From: Takakia lepidozioides
Lineage: Eukaryota; Plantae; Bryophyta
NCBI GenBank assembly: GCA_030704615.1
Contig: CM060731.1
Span: 11,036,001-11,100,000 of the forward strand
Reading direction: 5' to 3'
Length of the DNA: 64,000 nucleotides
This document shows, in pieces, positions 7,630 to 39,902 of the stretch (the first letter of the stretch is position 1; each line of letters starts with the position of its first letter). A program made the translations under genes and the position numbers. The notes under the pieces were generated by a model. It searched no databases. It was not told the origin of the DNA and worked only from the letters and a program-made list of their open reading frames with translations.

Positions 7630-9582
7630 CAACTAAGCAACCAACTAGGGGTAACATAATAATATTTTTTGGAATAATCACAATAACAGTGATCACCCTA
7701 TGCTGGCTAGCCCCCCCCCGGAATGTTCACATTTGCTATATTTGACCCACGTACGATCATCTATGAATCAACCCCACCATTACCAAAGTATATGAAGTAT
7801 CCAGAGCCATCCCTCTAAATTAGTCTATGTACACCACTCAGACAGCCCACAAATACCATGTACTTTCTTTGCACAATTAAAGCAAATATTAAACTAGTTG
7901 TTTGGCCCTACTGCCATAGTCTATGAACCGCAACAAGTGCCCCACATCTACCCTCGCATCAACCCAGACAAATGGAATATGGCCACCCCACGACCACCTT
8001 GGTAAACCCAACAACAACACCCATTCGGACAAATGCCGGACTTTACAAACTTAGCCCCTTTAAAATTCCCTTCCCACCAATGTGTATATACAGATGTCTC
8101 CCTAAAAGATGCACATGCAGGGTATGGTACATACTCTCCCAATAACAATTCAAGAACATACAACCGTCTTCCAGGTCGTCAAAATATTTTACGTATAGAA
8201 CTCATGGCTATACATGATGTGTTGAAAGCACTACCATGTCATCTTGGTTCGACCACCTACTACCTCTTTACAGATAGCTTAGTCTCTTTGTATCTCCTCT
8301 CTAACCAAAACCTTAAATCCTCCTCCCAAATTCATCACCCTGACCGTCACCTCATTAATGCCATCATAGATATTGTATACTCATCCCCAATACAAATTCA
8401 TCTCCACAAAGTCAGATCCCATATAAGTATCACGGGTAATGAGATAGCAGACGAACTTGCCCAACTTGGAATCATCCAACCTACTACTTACCCCACGACT
8501 GACTCTATTCACTTGGCATATCCATTCTAGCTGACATCCACTAAAGCTAGATTCCCGGACATAGCCCCCATTCGGGACCTGCATGCATATATGACAGAAG
8601 AAACTATGGATCAAATCCGTGCATCGCCCACCTTTCTAAAACCCTAGGTATATATCCAAATGGGTTACGCCACCTCAGCTGCTCCACCATATGTCTAATC
8701 ACTTATGGAAATCTCCAATAATCACTGATGCCCAAATTAAACAAACTCTCCGATTTCGATACGGACAATACATGGGCAATCAACGGCGTAATTTATTTTG
8801 GCCTATATTATATTCTAACAAGAACTGCACGTTATGTTATTCCCAACCCCCTCGAGTGGACACATGGCCGCATCTTCTTTTCCACTGTAAACATCCCATT
8901 ATCCATGGACTTCACATTACTCGACATAATCAAGGAGTTTGGCAACTCCATAAACTTCTTCTCACACACCCTAAAACTAGATGGTACAACCTCATTAATG
9001 CAGGCACATTTCAAGGTAGGCCACCGGACCACACAATACCTTCATGGTTGCTACCATGTACATGCGCTAATCACCCATGCCTCTGTTTGGCAAGATTATG
9101 TCCAGATATTCTTCTTGTCCAAGGACTCCCCATCTCGTCGACAGCACCAACAGGTCCACTCCCCTCCCTCACTATCCACATCATTGAATTTACCTTCTGT
9201 CATGACAGAGATCCCGACCAATCCATTATGTTCAAACGTGAAAATACGAACCCCTAGTTCTAGCCCTCCGTCAATAAGGATGGAACACTGCCCCTCTGAC
9301 AATTATCACCACTGGTGTCAAAGGGGGAGCTCACTGTCACAACAGTCTAATCCTAAACAAAAACCTTGAACTGCCTCATAAATATACCCCCCCCCCTATT
9401 ACGAACATTACACTTCACGGCCATCACTTCACTAACAGCCATTATCCTCAACAAAAGGAAGATTGAAAGTGGCCAGCTTGTCGCTTAGTAACTGGTTCTT
9501 GTTACCATAGAGCCCACCCCCCAAAGGGAGCAGTACCCACACGGGGAAGAGGCTCTTATTTATGCTAGCTTTGGCTAGCGTC
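7630..9582 (+). mobile_element. 5'-truncated non-LTR retrotransposon with RNase H, zinc finger and restriction-like endonuclease (Dualen/RandI-like)
   Basis: ORF 8033-8530: RNase H motifs (YTD, RIELMAI, FTDS, KVRSHISITGNEIADELA). ORF 8691-9257: CTLC..H....C, RHN, PDILL, IIEFT (PD-(D/E)xK RLE). 3' end has a hairpin followed by (AT)n. The 5' boundary is approximate. Confidence 0.75.
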
Positions 9583-11161: not shown

Positions 11162-12390
11162 TCCTTAAGTGGTATATCCACCCATTTTGGGTCGGTTGGG
11201 TTCACTTAACCAGCCATAACTTCCTGTGGTTAAGGCTGATTGGCCTTTTTTGGGCTCAATCGACAAATAATCGGGTCCCCCTTCATATGGCATTGGCCAA
11301 TTGGTCAATGACTGAAGGGGTAGGGGTCTGGACCAATTGGAAGGTGGCCAACTCAGCTTTTTGAGGCCATTTTGGCGCCCTTAACCTGCCCAAGTTGCTG
11401 ACATGGCAACTGCGGTCAGGTTAGGGTGAATGAATGATACCCCATAAAGGGATGGGCGGCACACTTCCCCAAACCCATTGATTGCCCGGCATGGGTATGG
11501 CGGTCTGGGTATTCCCAGGCCTGCGCCCTAACCTGAGATCGACGGCGATGGCAGCTCTGGCCCACACCATGGGCTCATAGCAGGCCGGGCTGGAGGGAGT
11601 GCAGCCGCTATGGCGGCAGAGCTCGCGGCTTGAGAAAACTCCCATGAGGAGTGGGCCAAACCTAGGGCGGGGGTTTGATAGGGTTGGGGGTGGGGTGGGC
11701 CCCCATCAAAGCAGGGCCGGGTAGCCAGAGGAGCTCCCAAACCCCGTGCCCTTCTGGGCTACTGCTTCAAAATGTCCTAGGCCTGCAGGCTATAACATAG
11801 GTGTGCCATTTGAAGTCTTGGGGACGGGAACCTAAAGATGCGGTGGCATTGGCTGATTGGTCCCAAACTTTGTCTGGGACTTCATATGAATGCCCATGAC
11901 ATTTCAACCGGAGGGGATTGACCGGCTGAAGTTTTTTGTATACTTTTAGGAAGAGAGATTTTGGCCTGCCCAAAGAAAATGGCATATTTTGACCCCCCCA
12001 ATTTGTCACTACAAAGGAGCCCACTTGAGAACATTTCAGAAAAAACTGAAAATTTCTGAGAATGTGTCAGTGTTATCAGGTATGGAACAACATTCTTGAG
12101 ACTCTCAAAAAGAAAAAATTAAAACTGCCCAAATACAATAAAAAAACTGCTTTTTTTGGCACCTATTTCTTAGTGGAGATTTTTTTTTGTCCCCACTCTA
12201 CACTTCATAATCTTCAGATCTGGCGGTTGGATTTGGATGAAACATTTTGTGGTGGGAGGTGCGGTAGGTGGGAAGTAATTCCAACGGTCAGTTTTACAGG
12301 GACACAGAGATTCTCCAGATAAAAAAGTTTTTGTGGGCCAGGGTCATGTTTTTCCACAGAAGGGTGAAAATGAGTTTTGGCACTTAAGGG
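11162..12390. mobile_element. non-autonomous piggyBac-like element
   Basis: TTAA at 11158-11161 and 12391-12394; TIR TCCTTAAGTG / CACTTAAGGG; right end matches the terminus at 33091 (CCCTTAAGTGCC). Confidence 0.7.
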
Positions 12391-13556
12391 TTAATTACCT
12401 TCAATGTTTCCAGATAAGCTTGGGCGGTTCTCAACGTCTTTGAACTGGTGGTAGACTTGTATTCAAGTTTTCACAAGAAGGCTGTGAGAAAACCTGACAT
12501 AGAGTATGTGGTTCTAAGCAAGATTTTTCAACATGAAATATGATGTTTATGCCACAGATGACATGTTGCTGTTTTTTTTCTTTCGTTTATTCTCTTTTTC
12601 TGGGTGGGGGTTAGGGGGTTACTTGCTTTTGGAAAAATTTCACCAACAACAAAAATTTTGGATAGTGGATTTTTGAAAGTATTAAGTTTACAATGGGGAA
12701 CTTTGCCTGTGAAACCTAGTTCTTAAAGGAAGAAGTTAATTACTAAAGGATAATCGCATACCACGTCAACTGTGACATTTAAGCCCCCTCCAATGTCATT
12801 GAGGTTTCAAAGTAAACCTCAACCACAATATTTGCTCAAGCCATTTCCTCTACGCACATATGAGGACCCACTTAGCCTTGCCTCTCGCCCCGCTGAAGTC
12901 TGTCGATTCGTGCTTACATGGTCCCCATGGTCCCCTTAACCCCCACAGGTTCCTGTGAAGTGTGTCCCCTCCACAGGTTCTCAACGGCGTTTACTAAGGT
13001 ATGGAACCGCGATCACAACTGCCAACAAATCAAATAACCGCCCAACACTGGACTCCACCCCGCGAATATAGTGGCTCATTTCAAGGGAAGTGACACCAAG
13101 TTGACACTTGCTTGAGCAGAAGTCAAATTTCTTTTCTCATTCCATGAAGATATCAATATAGTAAGAGAATACTCCAGCCAAAGCCAACGTAAATACGGCA
13201 AACGCCAACACCCTATCTCTATTATCAATATAGACATGCATATTAAATTCCTAGCAAGTCAGCGAACCTAGGGACCATGTGGGTGTTTGGGCCATACTTG
13301 GACAAATGCCAATTCTAGTCCAACGAATTTCACACCACTCACAAAGAATCTCAAATCTTCCAAATAAAATTTCCACTAGGGCCCCTGTCCCTTGTTTATC
13401 AAAATAAAATAAAAATCTCAAATAGTTTGAGTTGTATGGACGAAATATCTGCCCATGTATTTCTCATATGTATTGTGTTCAAATGGGTTTTGGTTAGATT
13501 ATAGAACTGATCTCAAATATCAACTCATTTTGGGACTCCCCAATACAATGATCATG

Positions 13557-29486: not shown

Positions 29487-29858
29487 CTACACTACATCAT
29501 TTATATTAGACAGCTTATTTTTTGACCCATTAAAAGTAAGAGGGAAATATCCAGTATTTACAGGGTTTCTGAGTGATTTTGATGGTTCATCATCCACAAG
29601 AGGGATTTGCCCTTCCCTCGCAAACGTTTTTCCAGGAAAACTAGTAAGAACGGTTTGAATATCCTTAATGAGATATCTCATCCCAGGCTTAATATAGCCG
29701 GCTGTCGCATTGCAATGCTCATTGGACCAAACAAAACAGAAGAGCTTCATCATATCAATGGGCACAAAACATTGTAGCATCTTAAAAACAATGTCTGTTT
29801 CAGAGCAAGACCAAATGGTGACATGAAAGTTTTCAAAAAGACGCCTCAGGAACTCCAA
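29487..29858 (-). pseudogene. FCP1/NIF HAD-like phosphatase domain fragment
   Basis: EFL....F.V.IWS...W.NEHC...LVDDEPSKSLRNP..T..FP..F.G matches the C-terminal NIF/FCP1 pattern; N-terminal DxDxT not seen. Confidence 0.6.
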
Positions 29859-29899
29859 ACGTCATTTGAAGCTCATTGATTCAATTTATTTTAGCTTAT

Positions 29900-32544: not shown

Positions 32545-33086
32545 TGGCGCCGCTGCCGGGGAAATACCAATTGAATGGGCTAAATTAAAATATTATAGTA
32601 GTGTGTGAAGGAAATTATTGGATTAAAGGAGAAGTGAAATACTAGTTGCTATGGATGATTATGAGACTGCATTGTTGGAAACTCGTGAGGTTAGGGCTTT
32701 AAAAAAGTTAGAGGGAGAAGAAATTCTAGAAAAGCATTTTCAAGAGTGAAAAAAATGTTCAAAGCCTAAAGATTTCAAGAGTGGAAAAACATGTTTTGCA
32801 AATTCTAGAAATGGATCCATTGTTGGGATACTTGATCATTCCAAATCAGAAAGGAAATAATGGTGCGAGATCTGACATATATATATTTTTCTATCATAAA
32901 GATAGTGTAAGGTGTGCCAATCTGAAATTCAAGAGGTGAAGTTTCAGATGTCACAGTCACAATTGAATATTGTTGATCCCAGATTTGTTGATGGTCATAA
33001 AGTGAAGAATACAATTCAATCTTCAGTTGAGTTACTGGAAATTTGTGGATTTTAGCAAAAATTTGGTAGCCGAGTCAAGAAGAATA
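32545..33086 (+). mobile_element. Athila/Tat-type gypsy PBS and start of internal region (LTR upstream)
   Basis: TGGCGCCGCTGCCGGGG at 32545-32561 after an ...ACA LTR-like end; truncated by the piggyBac terminus at 33087. Confidence 0.6.
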
Positions 33087-33090
33087 TTAA

Positions 33091-33360
33091 CCCTTAAGTG
33101 CCCAGTGCCCAATGTTGACTTTTTGAAAAAAAGTGGACCCCAGCTCAGAAAAATGAGAATATCTCAGCGAAAAAAAAGTTTTTGGGAAAATTGACCAGAC
33201 ATTATGCTCATACCTCCCCCTTGCAGACACCTGTAAATTTCCAGGCCAATCAGGCAAAAATTAGAGAAACGCCACCGTTGAGTGTGGGGCCCATTTTTTG
33301 GGCCCCTCCCAAGAAAATAAGGGAAATTGGAGGAATTTGCAATTTTCAATGATGGGATGA
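33091..33360. mobile_element. piggyBac-like terminus and subterminal region
   Basis: TTAA (33087-33090) then CCCTTAAGTGCCC; about 250 bp homologous to the ends of the 664-1317 and 39260-39902 elements (AAACGCCACCGTTG...GGCCCATTTTT). Partner TIR not located. Confidence 0.75.
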
Positions 33361-33693
33361 AATCTGCATGACCTCATCCTGCTTACAGGTGTTGTCCAGC
33401 ACATTGGCATTCTGATGAGCCATAGAATGCAAAAAATGGATTCATATTTTCTGATTTACAGCTGGTCAAAGTAAGGGGGGTCAAAATGCCATAGGCAGCA
33501 GCAGTTTTGCTGAAGCACAAAGACAGCCTGGTAGTGCCTGGCATGTGCACATAAGCTTCCACCATCTGCTCTCATTCTTTTGCCCAAGTTCCACACCAGC
33601 CTAAGGCACACAAAATGGAGTCTAGCAACATGAAGACAAAGGCCAGAATCAAGCACAGCAGCCAACTACTTCATCTCCTACCCATAGTGGGAG

Positions 33694-34207
33694 AGCATGG
33701 GTGGGATTTGAACCCACAGAGCTGCCCCAGCTGGCAGCCCATGCTGAAGCCAAATTCCACACAAGCCCAAGCTCCCAAAATATAGAGATGCAAAACAACA
33801 GCCTCACCTTTATCTCCCACCCTTAGTGGCCAAGCATGGGTGGGATTTGAACCCATGGAGCTACCCCAACTGGCAGCCCATGCTGAAGGCTTTTGGCCAA
33901 GTTCCACACAATCTGCACACTCCGAAAGTTTAGAGACAATGAGGCAGCCACACAAGCTTGAAGGCCAGCAAAATTCCAACACAATGAGGCAACATACAAA
34001 CCTGAACACAGATAATTCCATTGTGTGAGTGGGAATTGAACCCAGTGGCTTGCCCCAACTGGCAGCTCACACAAAGAAAGACCAACATGTGGCCAGCACT
34101 AGCATCAAATCAGACTTAGAAAAACCAGAGATGAACCCACCTTTACACGTCGAATTGTGTGAGTGGGAGTTGAACCCACTAACTTGCCCCAATTGGCAAC
34201 TCACACA
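33694..34207 (-). ncRNA. array of four 52-nt anticodon-less tRNA-like units (33694-33745, 33833-33884, 34022-34073, 34156-34207)
   Basis: Each unit: 7-bp acceptor stem, G, D-like hairpin YTGCC-ARYTGG-GGYAR, 4-nt linker, T-arm NTGGG-TTCAANT-CCCAC. Compensatory changes between units. Confidence 0.6.
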
Positions 34208-34961
34208 TGAACACAAGGGGGGAGTAGTTCCAATTCTGAATTGCATCTGCTTCTCTCTAGTGTAGTCCAACAGGCATTCATCTTTTTGTCTCCATTGTCC
34301 TGCCATTGACTGGGGTCGGAAAAGTGTTCATTCCAAAGCTTCTCCTCATCTCTGTTACCTATTTTTGGATATTTTCCTACTGCTACATCGGCAACAACTT
34401 GTCAAAGTCACTCTAAACCACCACAGATCCACCCAACGATCTAACTTATAGGATTCAATATGCATCTCAGGGCCGAGTCTGATGAGAGGGCAAAACAGGC
34501 TGAAATAGGTTGAAGAAGAAGGTGCCCTCACCACATTGTTCTTGACCTTGTGTCATGACCCATGGAGGATTTGACCGACCATCAACCCAAAAGGACCTCT
34601 TGTGTGTGTTGCTTGTGTCTGTAGTCAGGTAATGTTGGTATGTGAGATCGAACCACCACGATGCAGCTGAGCAGGCAGAGATTGAAACACGGCTTGCTAA
34701 GACCAAGCTGACTCTCCCAAGAACGGCGAGCTTCTCCTTGTCTCGTCTCTCTCAAAAAACGGCGAGCTCGCAAGAATGTTGGGAGCTTCTCCTCCTCGAC
34801 GAGATGACGAAAATGTCGAACTATGTCGGAGCATTTGCTCAAGAGTGGGTAGGTCTGCAAAGCCTCCATCCCGCGCTCCAACATCATCACATTCCATGAC
34901 ACAACATCTCTCGTAGGCGCAGGAGAAAAAAAAAACCCAAGTCGCAGGCCTCTGTTCAGGG

Positions 34962-35025
34962 AACCCTATAAGCAACTTTTTGAATTTTTTTAACCTTTTG
35001 CAAACCCTATAAGCAACTTTTTGAA
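34962..35025. repeat. short direct duplication AACCCTATAAGCAACTTTTTGAA x2
   Basis: Direct reading of the sequence. Confidence 0.7.
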
Positions 35026-35384: not shown

Positions 35385-35926
35385 GGATGGATGAGCTCAT
35401 CCAATGGATGGATCCATTCATGTATATGCCTTCAAAATGACACGTGTAGTAATAGAATCATATAAATGCCTTTAAAATGACACGTGTAGTGATGTAGTCA
35501 TATAAATAGGGTTATGAAACAACCTGCACTTAGGCAGTCATAAGTTTACATGTCATGTCATGCTGTGGATGAACTCATCCAATGGATGAATACATTCGTG
35601 TATGTGGCTTCAAAATGACACGTGTAGTGATGTAGTCGTATAATTAGAGCTGTGAAACCATCTTTAGTCATGGAGTCATAAAATTCCATGAAACGTCGTC
35701 CACGTGTAGTTAAACATATCACACTAGTCATATAAACCATCCCTGTCATCGTGGTCAACAATGTTTGACCAATGCTCCCTAACTTTCTAGAGTCATGTAG
35801 TTCCATTACTACAGAGTGATAAAACTATGATTGCAACGCATTTCAACGCTTTGTAGTCGTATACCTAGTGCAGTTTTTATGACTCCGCCAAAGCCGTAGT
35901 CCTAAAAACGCTCATATCTTGTAGTG
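35385..35926. mobile_element. CACTA element terminus inserted into the piggyBac transposase
   Basis: Terminus TTGTAGTG at 35919-35926 (rc CACTACAAGA); subterminal repeats AAAATGACACGTGTAGT x3 and a duplicated GGATGARCTCATCCAATGGATG block. Confidence 0.7.
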
Positions 35927-36430
35927 CAATTTTTTGATTCCCATGAGCATGTGAACAGCAAGCCAAGCCTTCAATCCACGAATGGTGATAGGGTACCACC
36001 ATCTACCTCCTTTCAGGTTTCCATTCTGGTTTTCTGTCCTAGCATACAAGTTGGTCATGTTGCAAATTTGGCGCATGACCGACAGTGGCCAAAACAAATT
36101 GAAAAGTCACTGGATTTGCTGAATCTCCAAAAGGCAAACGAGAACCCGAATCCCCACCTAACCATGTAATGTCTGGCAATTCAGTAGCAGTGGAGTTGCA
36201 CATGTCATCACCAAACAACTCAGCAGGACCCCACTGCTCCCAATTGGGCGGCAAATCATATAATCCCACCTCACGCCCTAGATTCCCCGTGTCCACACAG
36301 TAGTCCATCAAGTCAGGATTGTCGATGTCAACAAGGTCATTGTCTTCTGGATTATAGTCACAATCAGAATCTGATTCACTATCATCTACTTCCCCCTCAG
36401 GAAATTCGGCTTCATAATCCAACCCCAAGA
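35927..36430 (-). pseudogene. piggyBac (PGBD/DDE_Tnp_1_7-like) transposase N-terminal remnant
   Basis: Acidic N-terminus (DDSESDSDCDYNPED), then after a frameshift FNLFWPLSVMRQICNMTNLYA...WYPITIRGLKAWLAVHMLMGIKKL, matching the F.LF...TN.YA...W...T...K......MG pattern of piggyBac transposases. Cut by CACTA at 35926. Confidence 0.75.
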
Positions 36431-36497
36431 GCTCAAGGATAGTGCACAACATTAAATCATGAAGATTACACACAACACATGACTGTGACGATACCAC

Positions 36498-37740
36498 ATG
36501 AACACCAATGACACCAAAAAAAGAGACAGTATAATTCTCTGTACCATTCAGGATGTCCCATGTCTTGTCTACCACAGTGCCATATCCAAATTCGGGAAAG
36601 TAAAGGGAGATTGTTCAGAGTCACTGCTTTGGAAGGTACCTCTGCTGTGGAAGTCCCTTCTAGGTCTGCTGTCCCTGTTTTGCTCGAATTATACCATGCT
36701 TCTACTTATGCTGGCCATTTGGGGGTTGCTAAAACTATCAAGAGATTACAGGAGCATTGTACCACTGCAAGGCTTAGTTAAGGATGTCTCAGCTTTCATT
36801 GCAAGGTGTGTGCCCTGTCATGCTAAAACCATCCTACCTAGAACTGCAACTCCCTTGCCTTTACAGCCTATCCCGGTGACTGAACCATTTGCCAGGGTTG
36901 GCTTAGATCTAGTCAGACCCCTTAAATCCACGTCCAAGGGCCATGCATACCTTGCGGTTGCATCGGACTACCTGATGAAATGGGTTGAGCTCCGACCTCT
37001 GGTTGCTAAGGATAGTGATGAAGTGGTGCAATTCTTCTTTGATAAGGTGATTCATCGTCATGGTTGCCCTATGGAAATCCTCACGGATCAAGGTACAGAG
37101 TTCTGCAACCAACTTATGGAAATTGTCTTGTTTAATCTCAACACTAAGCATGTCGTTACTGCTCCCTACAATCCCCAATGCAATGGTTTGACAGAACGAT
37201 TTAACAAAACTATATGCCAGATGCTCGAGAAGAATGAGACACTCTTTGATGAATGAGATATTACTGTGCATATTCTGCTCTTTGCCTACATGACTTCTAT
37301 CCATACCAGTACCAAAATCTCACCTTTTGAACTTTTGTATGGTAGGAAATGTAGAACCCCTTTGCATATCTCCTGGCTGCAGGTCTCGGCTACTGAGCCT
37401 GAGAATTGTGAAGTCTTTTTGCTTTCCATGGATGCTAGAAGACGTAGTTTGAGGGAAACTGCCAAATCTAACATTGTGTTTGCCCAAGCTGCTCAAGCAA
37501 AGAATTACAACCGCCGAGTTGTGTACTCTGAGTCATTCAAGGTAGGCCAGTCTGTTTGTGTGAGACTCCAGCCTGGTAAGCATATTTCCAAGGCCAAACG
37601 AAGAATTGATGGCCCTTACCTTATCTCTGATATTCTTCCTGGCAGACAATATGTCTTGCTCCCACAACATGCCTCTACTCCTCACTTAGCTAGCTCCATT
37701 CATGTTTCACTACTTGTTCCATGCACTCTTACTTTTGATC
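36498..37740 (+). mobile_element. gypsy/Ginger-type integrase remnant (Zn-binding, rve DDE, GPY/F)
   Basis: H...GHLG..KT, CxxC, PFARVGLDLV, ILTDQGTEF, YNPQCNGLTERFN, SPFELLYGR, GPY; frameshift and stop present. Confidence 0.85.
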
Positions 37741-39259
37741 TCACTTGTTTGAATGTTGAGAACCGTCAGGTGATCTTCACCCCCACAGCTCGGACAGCTC
37801 GCATTCAAAACATGACATCATCTTCTTTAGAATAATGTTTGAATTTTGTGCTAGTTTTCTGCACCATTTGTAGCACTCGGGGTTTTTCCTATAGGATGTT
37901 TTGTCCTCCACCCAGCTTGCAGGGTGAGGTATTCTTCCATAGGTTTTTTCATCCCTTGTGTGCCAGGTGTGTAGCTTGTTTTGGCTAGGCTTCATTTTTG
38001 TTCTCCCTGAGCTCATCACTCGCAGGAGCTCGCAGTTTCTTGTGGCCCCAGCAGGCTTCACATATGTGGAGCTAGGATTCATTCTCACCTTACTTTTCGA
38101 CATGGATGAATGGAGGAGGGATGCGCTCCGGATGATTTAAGGGATGGACAAAGCCAGGATGAAGTCTGGATGAACTTACACCTTGCGCATGAGGATGAGC
38201 TGGCAACAGCTGATGGCTTTATCAGGGGCTGTCTTATTCTAACAGCTAGTTCAGGATTAGATTAAGATGGGACTAGGTGATTTGGCTTCTTTCTATGGTT
38301 GTGCTGGAAGGGCATCTGGAGGACCTATGTGTAAGTGCCACGCAACACTAGGATTAGATTATAACCTAATACTATTTAAACCTCACTGCCGTGGCAGTGA
38401 GGGTGGTGGCTTTTTGGGTCTTACGCGAGCGTACGTTGGGTTTTAGATATGACTTCATGTATCGAAATACATGATTTGAAGTACGATGCAATGTCATGCC
38501 AGAGTTTTCATAAAGAAGGTCACCCTTCTCAATTTATGCCACTACCTGCTCCGTAGTGGGAATGTCCAACCCTTGAGTGGTTGGATGAAAGTGTTAGGAG
38601 GTCTGAGTTTGTGGCGTCCTCTTAGTAAGATTCCGTCTTATCTGCCAGGCCCATCTATCGACTACATTCCCCAGATAAGGTTAAGTTCGGTAGAGGAAGG
38701 AGAACAAACCCATAGCGCCGGAATCAGGCTTCACATACTGAGGGCAAATAAATAAAGTAGTGGCGTCCATTCTGAAATAGAACAAAATTTTGTCATGCAC
38801 CCTATACCCCGGGTGTGTGTAGAACTTAGGGTTTAGGGTTCCAAACATACCCAAACTGATACCATACTAGTCACGGTAGCTGGCGGAGCAATAGTGCGAT
38901 TGCGAACAGTAGTCAGCGGGGCAGTTTTTTTCAGACGGGAGGGGTAGCAGTTATGGCGTTAGGGTGCGCCATGTTGTGTTTGCTATGGGAGGGGTTTCAA
39001 TTTTATGGCTGGATCTTTGATGTAGGGAGTCGCAAAAGATTGAACAGTCGGCTTTGTGATTGCAATTTGTTTTTTTTTTACCTTTTGTATGTTGCCCTCA
39101 ATCTGGTTTTTTTTTTCAGCTTTGAATGGAGTATGATGAATGTTGGGTTATACCATACTATTGTATATGCTACCCCAGTATGTCATATGAGTTTTTGCCA
39201 TACCCATGCCTAGAACCAGAGTATCTCAAAATTGGAAATACCCATACCCATCCTATAAC

Positions 39260-39902
39260 CCCTAAACGCCCGCAGGCCTCCGTTGACTTTTCCCAAAAAA
39301 TTGACCCCCGACCAGAAAAACGAGCGTAATTTTTTGAGAAAAGTGCGTCTGCAAGAAACAACCAGACAATATGTTGCCACCTACCCCTGGCAAGTCCTGC
39401 CCAAATTTCGAGCCAATCAGACAAATGCTGCGGAAACACCACCATTGCGAGTAGGGCCCATTTTTGGGAATTTTTGCAAAAACAAAATAAAAAAAAATGG
39501 AGATTTGCAAGATTTTGCATGTCGGGATGGCATTGGCTCGGCCTGCTCTACCCCAAAAGGTGTTCCCCACGTCCCCCTTGCTCCAACAAGCCCAAAATCA
39601 CCAGAATTGGAGCCCATGGCAGGAGCAGGGACTTGGTCAAAGTGCAGGGGGTATGAGATACTCTTTTATGAGCTATGCACAGGAAAACAAAGAGGCGGCA
39701 ATCAGAATCCCCCCAAAAAAGCCCTAGATTTCTGCCGTCCCTCCTGGTCCATCCTGATCTGGGCAATCGCTCTCGCATGGACCATCCTGCCATCGACACG
39801 CATTACACTCAACAAAAAAAATCAGAATCGGCCAAAATCTGCAACTGCAGACCTGTTTGAGCCCAGAAAATGGCCCGTTTTTGGCTGGCAGGCGTTTAAG
39901 GG
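39260..39902. mobile_element. non-autonomous piggyBac-like element with ATAA TSD
   Basis: ATAA-CCCCTAAACGCCCGC ... GCAGGCGTTTAAGGG-ATAA; inverted homolog of 664-1317. Confidence 0.8.

Follow-up and report, generated by a model that had tools for sequence, protein, structure and literature searches.

Anticodon-less tRNA-like units in a piggyBac element of Takakia lepidozioides: candidate signals for host tRNA-processing enzymes

Described tRNA mimics and the Takakia array

Structures that mimic tRNA, and that thereby borrow RNase P and RNase Z, are found in a few animal long non-coding RNAs, in plant mitochondria, in one herpesvirus, and in synthetic guide-RNA arrays. The mascRNA/MEN-beta tRNA-like element resides in the Pol II transcripts MALAT1 and NEAT1, and its anticodon region is reduced. 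RNase P and RNase Z cleave it and it receives a CCA tail; the result is a free RNA of roughly 60 nt and a poly(A)-independent 3' end. Plant mitochondrial t-elements are tRNA-like structures that serve solely as RNase P/RNase Z processing signals at mRNA ends. In the TMERs of MHV68, in plant tRNA-snoRNA dicistrons, and in synthetic tRNA-gRNA arrays, tRNA or tRNA-like units alternate with other RNAs; in these Pol III tRNA-linked cassettes, the parts are separated by RNase P/Z. Finally, tRNA-carrying retroelements have full-length tRNA-like heads, which are used as a Pol III promoter.

The array described here lies in a stretch of 64,000 nt from Takakia lepidozioides, referred to below as the window. 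It shares with mascRNA (RF01684) a small tRNA-like fold in which the acceptor and the T-arm are intact and the anticodon region is reduced. However, no Rfam family reaches its threshold over the units. The best sub-threshold matches are to tRNA-Sec (28.6 bits versus 47) and to mascRNA-menRNA (21.7 bits versus a gathering score of 42.5); that is, the units are not members of RF01684. The array also differs from mascRNA in that it has no upstream ENE and A-rich triple-helix, as judged by eye, in that the unit is repeated four times, and in that it is found in a plant, on a DNA transposon, where the enzyme would be a protein-only RNase P. The t-elements are organellar, single, and located beside mitochondrial genes, whereas the context of the array, i.e., piggyBac and other nuclear repeats, is nuclear. 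Unlike the tRNA-linked cassettes, the array has spacers without any hairpin, snoRNA or other family signal, and its units lack the full tRNA length that carries the normal A/B-box promoter. Like tRNA-derived SINEs and tRNA-in-LTR miniature retrotransposons, the array is mobile, tRNA-derived sequence with a B box; in contrast to these retroelements, it sits on a cut-and-paste DNA transposon, as an internal array of units without an anticodon arm. A tRNA-derived SINE was considered and rejected, given the internal array, the absence of a tail and of duplications at the unit edges, and the single solitary, divergent unit (261-310). Set beside these systems, the array would be a candidate processing element of the tRNA-mimic type in a new carrier, in array form, and in a plant.

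The original prediction for this DNA had known of no described equivalent, and our own search of 8.4 million articles and preprints, in which journal coverage was incomplete, likewise found no published tRNA-like elements in piggyBac or other DNA transposons. Metagenome, viral and prokaryote collections gave no matches to the strict D-loop plus T-arm pattern, and proteins from spurious ORFs across the array, used as queries, gave none either. In metagenomes, a pattern with two T-arms recovered tRNA clusters and two other loci, L002 and L008, and no anticodon-less units. L008 (2217-2399, minus strand), from a soil metagenome, carries two identical 41-nt minihelices at a distance of 142 nt, in each of which acceptor and T-arm are present and both the D arm and the anticodon arm are missing; they lie in GC-rich DNA, within a direct repeat of 142 nt. 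According to ARAGORN there is no tRNA at this place, and except for the T-arm these minihelices are unrelated to the plant units. L002 (560-1340, plus strand) is a tandem satellite of ~68 nt with the T-arm GGGTTCAAATCCCAC in every repeat; it is probably tRNA- or SINE-derived, and eukaryotic.

Fold of the units and variation in their stems

The four units, U1 to U4, each fold alone into one common three-helix shape. The outer part of this shape is a 7-bp closing (acceptor) helix, followed by one unpaired base; the inner part consists of two 5-bp hairpins joined by a 4-nt linker, the first with a 6-nt loop, AGYTGG, and the second with a 7-nt loop, TTCAANT. In tRNA numbering, the bases kept are A14, R15, Y16, G18, G19, G53, T54, T55, C56, A57, A58 and C61, and the linker takes the place of positions 26-48, i.e., of the anticodon arm and the variable loop. 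The window contains no tRNA gene according to ARAGORN (0 genes), nor any Rfam tRNA match at the gathering score. A T-arm pattern of 15 nt, by contrast with the 0.01 occurrences expected by chance, is found there five times.

The four units of 52 nt on the minus strand, their spacers of 87, 137 and 82 nt, and the invariant GG of the D-loop and TTCAA of the T-loop in U1-U4 are as originally predicted. We scored the units with a covariance model, R1, built from U1-U4 and scanned against the 64,000-nt window. The first unit in the direction of transcription is U4 (34207-34156, minus strand, as are all units and spacers; 52 nt; 77.7 bits), with the acceptor TGTGTGA/TCACACA, the D-stem TTGCC/GGCAA and the T-arm GTGGG-TTCAACT-CCCAC. 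It is followed, after the 82-nt spacer (34074..34155; fold z of -0.81 versus shuffles), by U3 (34073-34022; 52 nt; 74.6 bits), which has the acceptor of U4, a C.A mismatch at D-stem pair 9-24, and a C.C mismatch at the first T-stem pair. Next come the 137-nt spacer, without a stable fold (33885..34021; z of +1.15), and U2 (33884-33833; 52 nt; 75.1 bits), whose acceptor is AGCATGG/CCATGCT. The non-Watson-Crick pairs of U2 are G.U at 11-22 and A.C at the first T-stem pair, both of which are Watson-Crick in one paralog contig. The 87-nt spacer (33746..33832) leads to the last unit, U1 (33745-33694; 52 nt; 79.3 bits), in which 17 of 17 pairs are Watson-Crick and whose fold, taken alone, has an energy of -27.1 kcal/mol (z of -2.65).

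The U2-U1 spacer and the neighboring period have a common 5'-flank motif (GTGTGGAAYTTGG...CTTC) and a common 3'-flank motif. The flank motif appears again at about 33580-33600, and a sixth, decayed unit 3' of U1 was considered there; R1 finds none at this position. We also noted that the 3' flank of U2 (33786-33832, minus strand) contains GGGTGGGA, the perfect 8-nt complement of TCCCACCC, which comprises the T-stem 3' strand and the start of the acceptor 3' strand; for U1 (33664-33693, minus strand) the complement is 7/8. This pairing could compete with the tRNA-like shape, and it is used for U1 in the minimum-energy fold of the whole region.

A further unit, U5, is solitary and divergent (310-261, minus strand; 28.8 bits with R1; E about 1e-6, namely 1.1e-6), and its surroundings do not align with the array. 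Its acceptor sequence is a third one (GAACUG/CAGUUU), its D-stem has 4 bp, G18 and G19 are present, and its T-loop is UUCAAUC. The elbow set, i.e., G18, G19, T54, T55, C56, R57 and A58 together with the G53-C61 pair, is invariant in U1-U4 and present in U5.

The acceptor of U1/U2 differs from that of U3/U4 at 4 of the 7 pairs, and both are 100% paired; pair counts thus bear out what had been predicted for this helix. D-stem pair 9-24 reads C-G, C-G, C.A and U-A from U1 to U4, so the predicted switch from C-G to T-A in U4 stands, whereas the mismatched first T-stem pair of U2 and U3 had been glossed over. Standard pairs account for 95.6% of the pair cells in the four units and for 94% in the five; changes on both sides are seen at five pairs in the former set and at six in the latter. 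The covariation score is 0.38-0.42, versus 0.16-0.20 in shuffles, and 0 of 500 shuffles reach the observed value (for the five-unit set, 0.42 versus 0.16 shuffled). When the partners were slid by 1-3 columns as a control, pairing went down to 29-56%, the five-unit set giving 30-56%. The sample consists of five units and a few variants from paralog contigs, with perhaps two or three independent stem replacements, and the compensatory variation of the stems is a suggestive signal from five units rather than a statistically proven one.

Conservation has sharp edges around the units. U3 and U4 are 88% identical, whereas their 40-nt flanks are 50% and 51% identical, for a random level of 47%. For U1 and U2 the identity is 92% in the unit and 53% and 68% in the flanks; over the 129-nt stretch around each of these units (unit included), it is about 79%. 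The claim that the spacers are much less conserved than the units therefore holds for U3/U4, and only partly for U1/U2. In one paralog contig, which covers 34022-34224, five of six differences fall in the 82-nt spacer and one in the 104 nt of U3 and U4, where U-A becomes U.G and the pair is kept. A second paralog contig differs from U2 by six changes, of which two restore Watson-Crick pairs, two are in the linker, two are in the D-loop, and none breaks a pair.

It is quite improbable, in our estimate, that the array is a functionless relic, i.e., a tRNA-derived fragment tandemly duplicated in one piggyBac lineage, whose stems have been kept by youth, gene conversion or inverted-repeat template switching and not by selection on RNA. 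Template switching can yield compensatory-looking changes in a single step, and such an origin would be in line with the existence of only two or three independent stem versions, with the mismatches in U2 and U3 of the present copy, and with a contig depth that suggests only tens of family copies. It does not, however, account for the 88% identity of U3 and U4 within sharp 52-nt edges and between flanks at the random level, for the fact that the invariant bases are those that form the elbow, or for the same architecture, with a third acceptor sequence, in the divergent U5. Nor does it agree with paralog changes that avoid breaking pairs, although one variant (34187) does break one. The pairing, the covariation score and the sharp 52-nt edges thus support the predicted nature of the units as selected, structured tRNA mimics without an anticodon arm.

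The piggyBac context of the array

The suggestion that a mobile element carries the array is now given substance: the carrier is piggyBac, as identified by a TTAA|CCC end at 33087 and by a co-oriented 5' fragment of the transposase. At 33087, the plus strand reads TTAA|CCCTTAAG, i.e., TTAA followed by a CCC-type piggyBac terminus. In the orientation of the units, this end region (33087..33693, minus strand) comprises the TTAA at 33087-33090, the terminus CCCTTAAGTGCCC and a subterminal stretch of about 600 nt, and the array starts 603 nt inside the end. Related ends are found in the window at 660(+), 1305(-), 12378-12394(-) and 39256(+); their identity with the 33087 end is about 70% over some 215-270 nt. 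No inverted partner end with up to 3 mismatches is found to the right of 33087. The piggyBac copy that bears the array is truncated or rearranged.

The broken transposase 5' fragment (36584-35927, minus strand) is about 1.7 kb upstream of the array and co-oriented with the units. Pfam gives no match on the fragment itself. Among 1.84 billion representative proteins, ORF 36042-36614 has a sole match, P0001 (E of 1.2e-10), which is encoded on Logan contig L001 directly upstream of a gene piece with the DDE_Tnp_1_7 domain (PF13843). The window is collinear with L001 across the start of this DDE domain (E of 2.6e-12 and 3.4e-16). L001 is a short contig, the only one in the library to match the transposase fragment, and it ends before any 3' region; the putative location of the array 3' of the transposase gene is indicated here by the shared orientation. 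Integrase-like ORFs, by eye of the Ty3/gypsy type, adjoin the fragment on the opposite strand (36600-37835, plus strand) and may explain the missing 5' end of piggyBac. Elsewhere in the window, an ORF with an RNase H domain (8006-8527, plus strand; PF00075, E of 1.4e-12) is probably part of a retroelement, and another (29490-29861, minus strand) has a borderline match to NIF phosphatase (PF03031, E of 1.6e-4, exactly the cut-off).

A very-high-copy repeat (34225..34775, assigned to neither strand) starts 17 nt upstream of U4. Contig depth rises there from about 100-240 to 25,000-190,000, compared with ~5 for unique sequence, and contigs of the array family end or diverge at 34224. In the present copy, this repeat separates the array from its native upstream sequence; because the sequence upstream of U4 has been replaced, the link from the array to the 3' end of the transposase is less direct. 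The repeat matches neither Pfam nor Rfam. Two runs guessed to be RNA likewise contain it in abundance, and the copy in the window has T at many positions where the family has C, which looks like decay by deamination. The interval 34258-34965 was considered as a fragment of a PPR gene and then as a tRNA-derived SINE head; neither has Pfam or Rfam support. Between the transposase fragment and the high-copy repeat, 35388-35700 contains 40-nt and 138-nt repeats, tandem as well as dispersed, that are built around ACTACACGTGTCATTTT.

Summed contig depth in one DNA run, which is a rough guide and not a copy number, is roughly 20-40x that of the unique flank for the array and 25-140x for the terminal region. 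It suggests that the array family has tens of copies only. A contig of runs X1 and X5 connects 33486 directly with the final base of U3, 34022, and has only 28 nt on the shorter side of the joint; it is a faint hint that some copies may be without U1 and U2 as well as the 207 nt that follow U1, i.e., that a two-unit form may exist.

An element of ~660 bp at 660-1321, flanked by TTAA and with inverted CCCTTAAACGCCC ends, looks like a piggyBac-type MITE, and the further single ends at 39256-39530 and 12378-12394 are related to it and without a tRNA-like unit. In the window, none of the short elements with the same termini as the array-bearing copy (660-1321 and the related ends) contains such units. 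Since these short, same-ended elements lack them, transposition does not seem to require the array in cis; the array appears to go with the longer, gene-bearing form of piggyBac. The same elements make it most improbable that the units are DNA-level cis elements of transposition, namely subterminal repeats bound by the transposase, or cruciforms. The array does lie in the subterminal 0.6-1.1 kb of the element, and piggyBac ends carry internal repeats; yet DNA binding would leave the tRNA-specific loop bases unexplained, and G.U pairs work on one strand only.

These G.U pairs bear on the strand more generally. They are found at 11-22 in U2, at 1-52 in U5, and in a paralog variant at 34184, and on the plus strand each of them would be A.C. 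The D-loop and the T-loop are of the tRNA type when read on the minus strand only. Taken together with the strand of the transposase fragment, the loops and the G.U pairs lead us to favor units that would act as minus-strand RNA, and not as a double-stranded DNA signal.

Host tRNA enzymes and the candidate processing signals

Land plants have a protein-only RNase P (PRORP). The stack formed by the acceptor and the T-arm is what RNase Z and the CCA-adding enzyme recognize as well. Cleavage by plant PRORP is not reduced when the anticodon domain of a pre-tRNA is deleted, and it is abolished by an additional deletion of the D domain (Gobert et al. 2013, PMC3562450). PRORP needs G18, C56 and a purine at 57, puts no constraint on positions 1 and 72, and is inhibited by a 3' CCA (PMC3562450). 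According to Mao et al., the acceptor-T stack and the T-loop are essential for PRORP, and the D/T elbow provides tight binding (PMC4975455).

The units have the features that PRORP and RNase Z look for, i.e., a 7-bp acceptor, a 5-bp T stem, a D domain, G18, C56, R57 and no 3' CCA; the D hairpin, G18, G19, C56 and A57 are kept in all of them. The parts that vary, namely the acceptor sequence and the linker, and the parts that do not, namely the elbow bases and the 12-bp stack, correspond to PRORP's published requirements. The predicted recognition geometry hence matches what the two studies describe (PMC3562450, PMC4975455), and by structure the units are candidate substrates. In its acceptor, D and T domains, its G18, C56 and R57, and its lack of a 3' CCA, the minimal PRORP substrate resembles them closely (PMC3562450); that substrate, however, was engineered from mitochondrial tRNA-Cys, whereas the units are natural, repeated, and part of a nuclear transposon.

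On the basis of this match and of the piggyBac context, our tentative reading, to which we give slightly less than an even chance, is that the units are tRNA-mimic processing signals in the minus-strand transcript of piggyBac. The four units would act as RNA, as cis-acting tRNA mimics downstream of a bryophyte-type piggyBac transposase gene. In the minus-strand transcript, each unit would fold into a 12-bp acceptor/T-arm stack with an elbow formed by the D-loop and the T-loop. Host PRORP would then cut at the 5' edge of the unit, and RNase Z after the discriminator base. The transposon transcript would thereby be cut at fixed points, giving a transposase RNA that ends without polyadenylation; the other products would be four mascRNA-like RNAs of 52 nt, probably CCA-tailed, plus the spacers. 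The element might conceivably benefit through the 3' end or the dosage of the transposase mRNA, or through escape from RNA silencing. Beneath this model are features that our analysis establishes, namely the structure, the compensatory variation, the sharp edges, the strand, the piggyBac context and the absence from short derivatives. Several points count against it. No A-rich, U-rich or triple-helix element is seen by eye upstream of any unit, so the 3' end of the cut mRNA would be unprotected. In the present copy, U2 and U3 carry a mismatch at the first T-stem pair. The small sample of five units and the replaced sequence upstream of U4, both described above, weigh against it as well.

The structural evidence would serve equally for units that remain uncut in the 3' region of the transposon mRNA. 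Here they would bind host factors that recognize tRNA, such as the CCA-adding enzyme, eEF1A, exportin or La, and these would stabilize, export, translate or move the RNA. Plant viruses with tRNA-like structures at their 3' ends, and mobile plant mRNAs with tRNA-like motifs, offer analogies. Contigs that run through the array in runs guessed to be RNA suggest that some RNA keeps the units. Nevertheless, a terminal cap does not need four copies, no CCA anti-determinant is found 3' of any unit, and units with an intact elbow (G18, C56, R57) and free flanks are expected to be cut (PMC3562450). We consider uncut elements distinctly unlikely.

The same contigs carry what trace of transcription there is. 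The array stretch is in none of the runs on record as RNA. Two runs whose RNA nature is guessed, X6 and X7, have contigs at least 85% alike to it. In X7, every bin of 33666-34257 has contig coverage and the terminal 33074-33665 has none; in the DNA runs, this terminal part exceeds the array in abundance. Logan contigs show neither the ends, the strand nor the level of an RNA, and it is as a weak indication that we take this pattern to be hard to obtain from DNA contamination, and to fit array-containing transcripts that stop close to the 3' side of U1.

A different use of the units, as DNA, is unlikely in our judgment, though of the kind that the original prediction had put forward in its Pol III version. 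They would be small Pol III genes, each giving a tRNA-like RNA with a trailer, or else TFIIIC sites, i.e., B-box arrays that shield the transposon from silent chromatin in the manner of tDNA/ETC insulators. A B box close to the consensus (GGTTCAANTCC) is indeed present in every unit, together with an A-box 3' half (AGYTGG). The 5' half of the A box is mismatched, however, and the two boxes are about 12 bp apart. In tRNA genes, this distance is about 30 bp or more. The compensatory changes, moreover, sit in the acceptor helix, which TFIIIC binding does not need. A run of at least 4 T is found within 31-78 nt 3' of each unit, but the chance of finding a T-run within 90 nt is 0.42 over the window and 0.66 in the local sequence, and these runs were rejected as Pol III terminators because they are not significant. 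The high-copy repeat begins 17 nt upstream of U4, a distance classically seen with elements targeting Pol III genes; this is one anecdote. Promoter use by Pol III is thus doubtful: the good B box stands, and the half A box, the spacing and the ordinary T-runs speak against it.

As for the spacers, their folds are no better than those of shuffled sequences (z from -0.81 to +1.15), they match no Rfam family and show no hairpin, miRNA or snoRNA signal, and no target-like matches to them occur elsewhere in the window. Hairpins, miRNAs and snoRNAs were rejected on the fold z-scores and Rfam. The release of functional spacer RNAs, which had been suggested for this array, accordingly finds no support.

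Beyond the processing signals themselves, a broader proposal is that a piggyBac family has evolved a minimal tRNA-mimic array that hijacks host tRNA processing, which we regard as doubtful, if conceivable. Under this proposal, PRORP and RNase Z would yield a poly(A)-independent transposase mRNA, CCA-tailed RNAs of 52 nt and defined spacer RNAs, and with the released RNAs the element would regulate its dosage or escape RNA silencing. If true, the array would be an RNA-processing cassette encoded by a transposon, for which no counterpart has been described in DNA transposons.

If the processing reading is confirmed, the units would offer a natural set of 52-nt substrates for PRORP and RNase Z with built-in sequence variation, and compact, plant-derived processing signals for multiplexed RNA expression. 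Because piggyBac is a widely used tool for gene transfer, natural RNA elements that accompany it would also be of practical interest. For the transposon family and its host, confirmation would mean that a natural, repeated and minimal tRNA mimic resides on a cut-and-paste transposon of a land plant, and that DNA transposons are able to draw on tRNA processing to express themselves.
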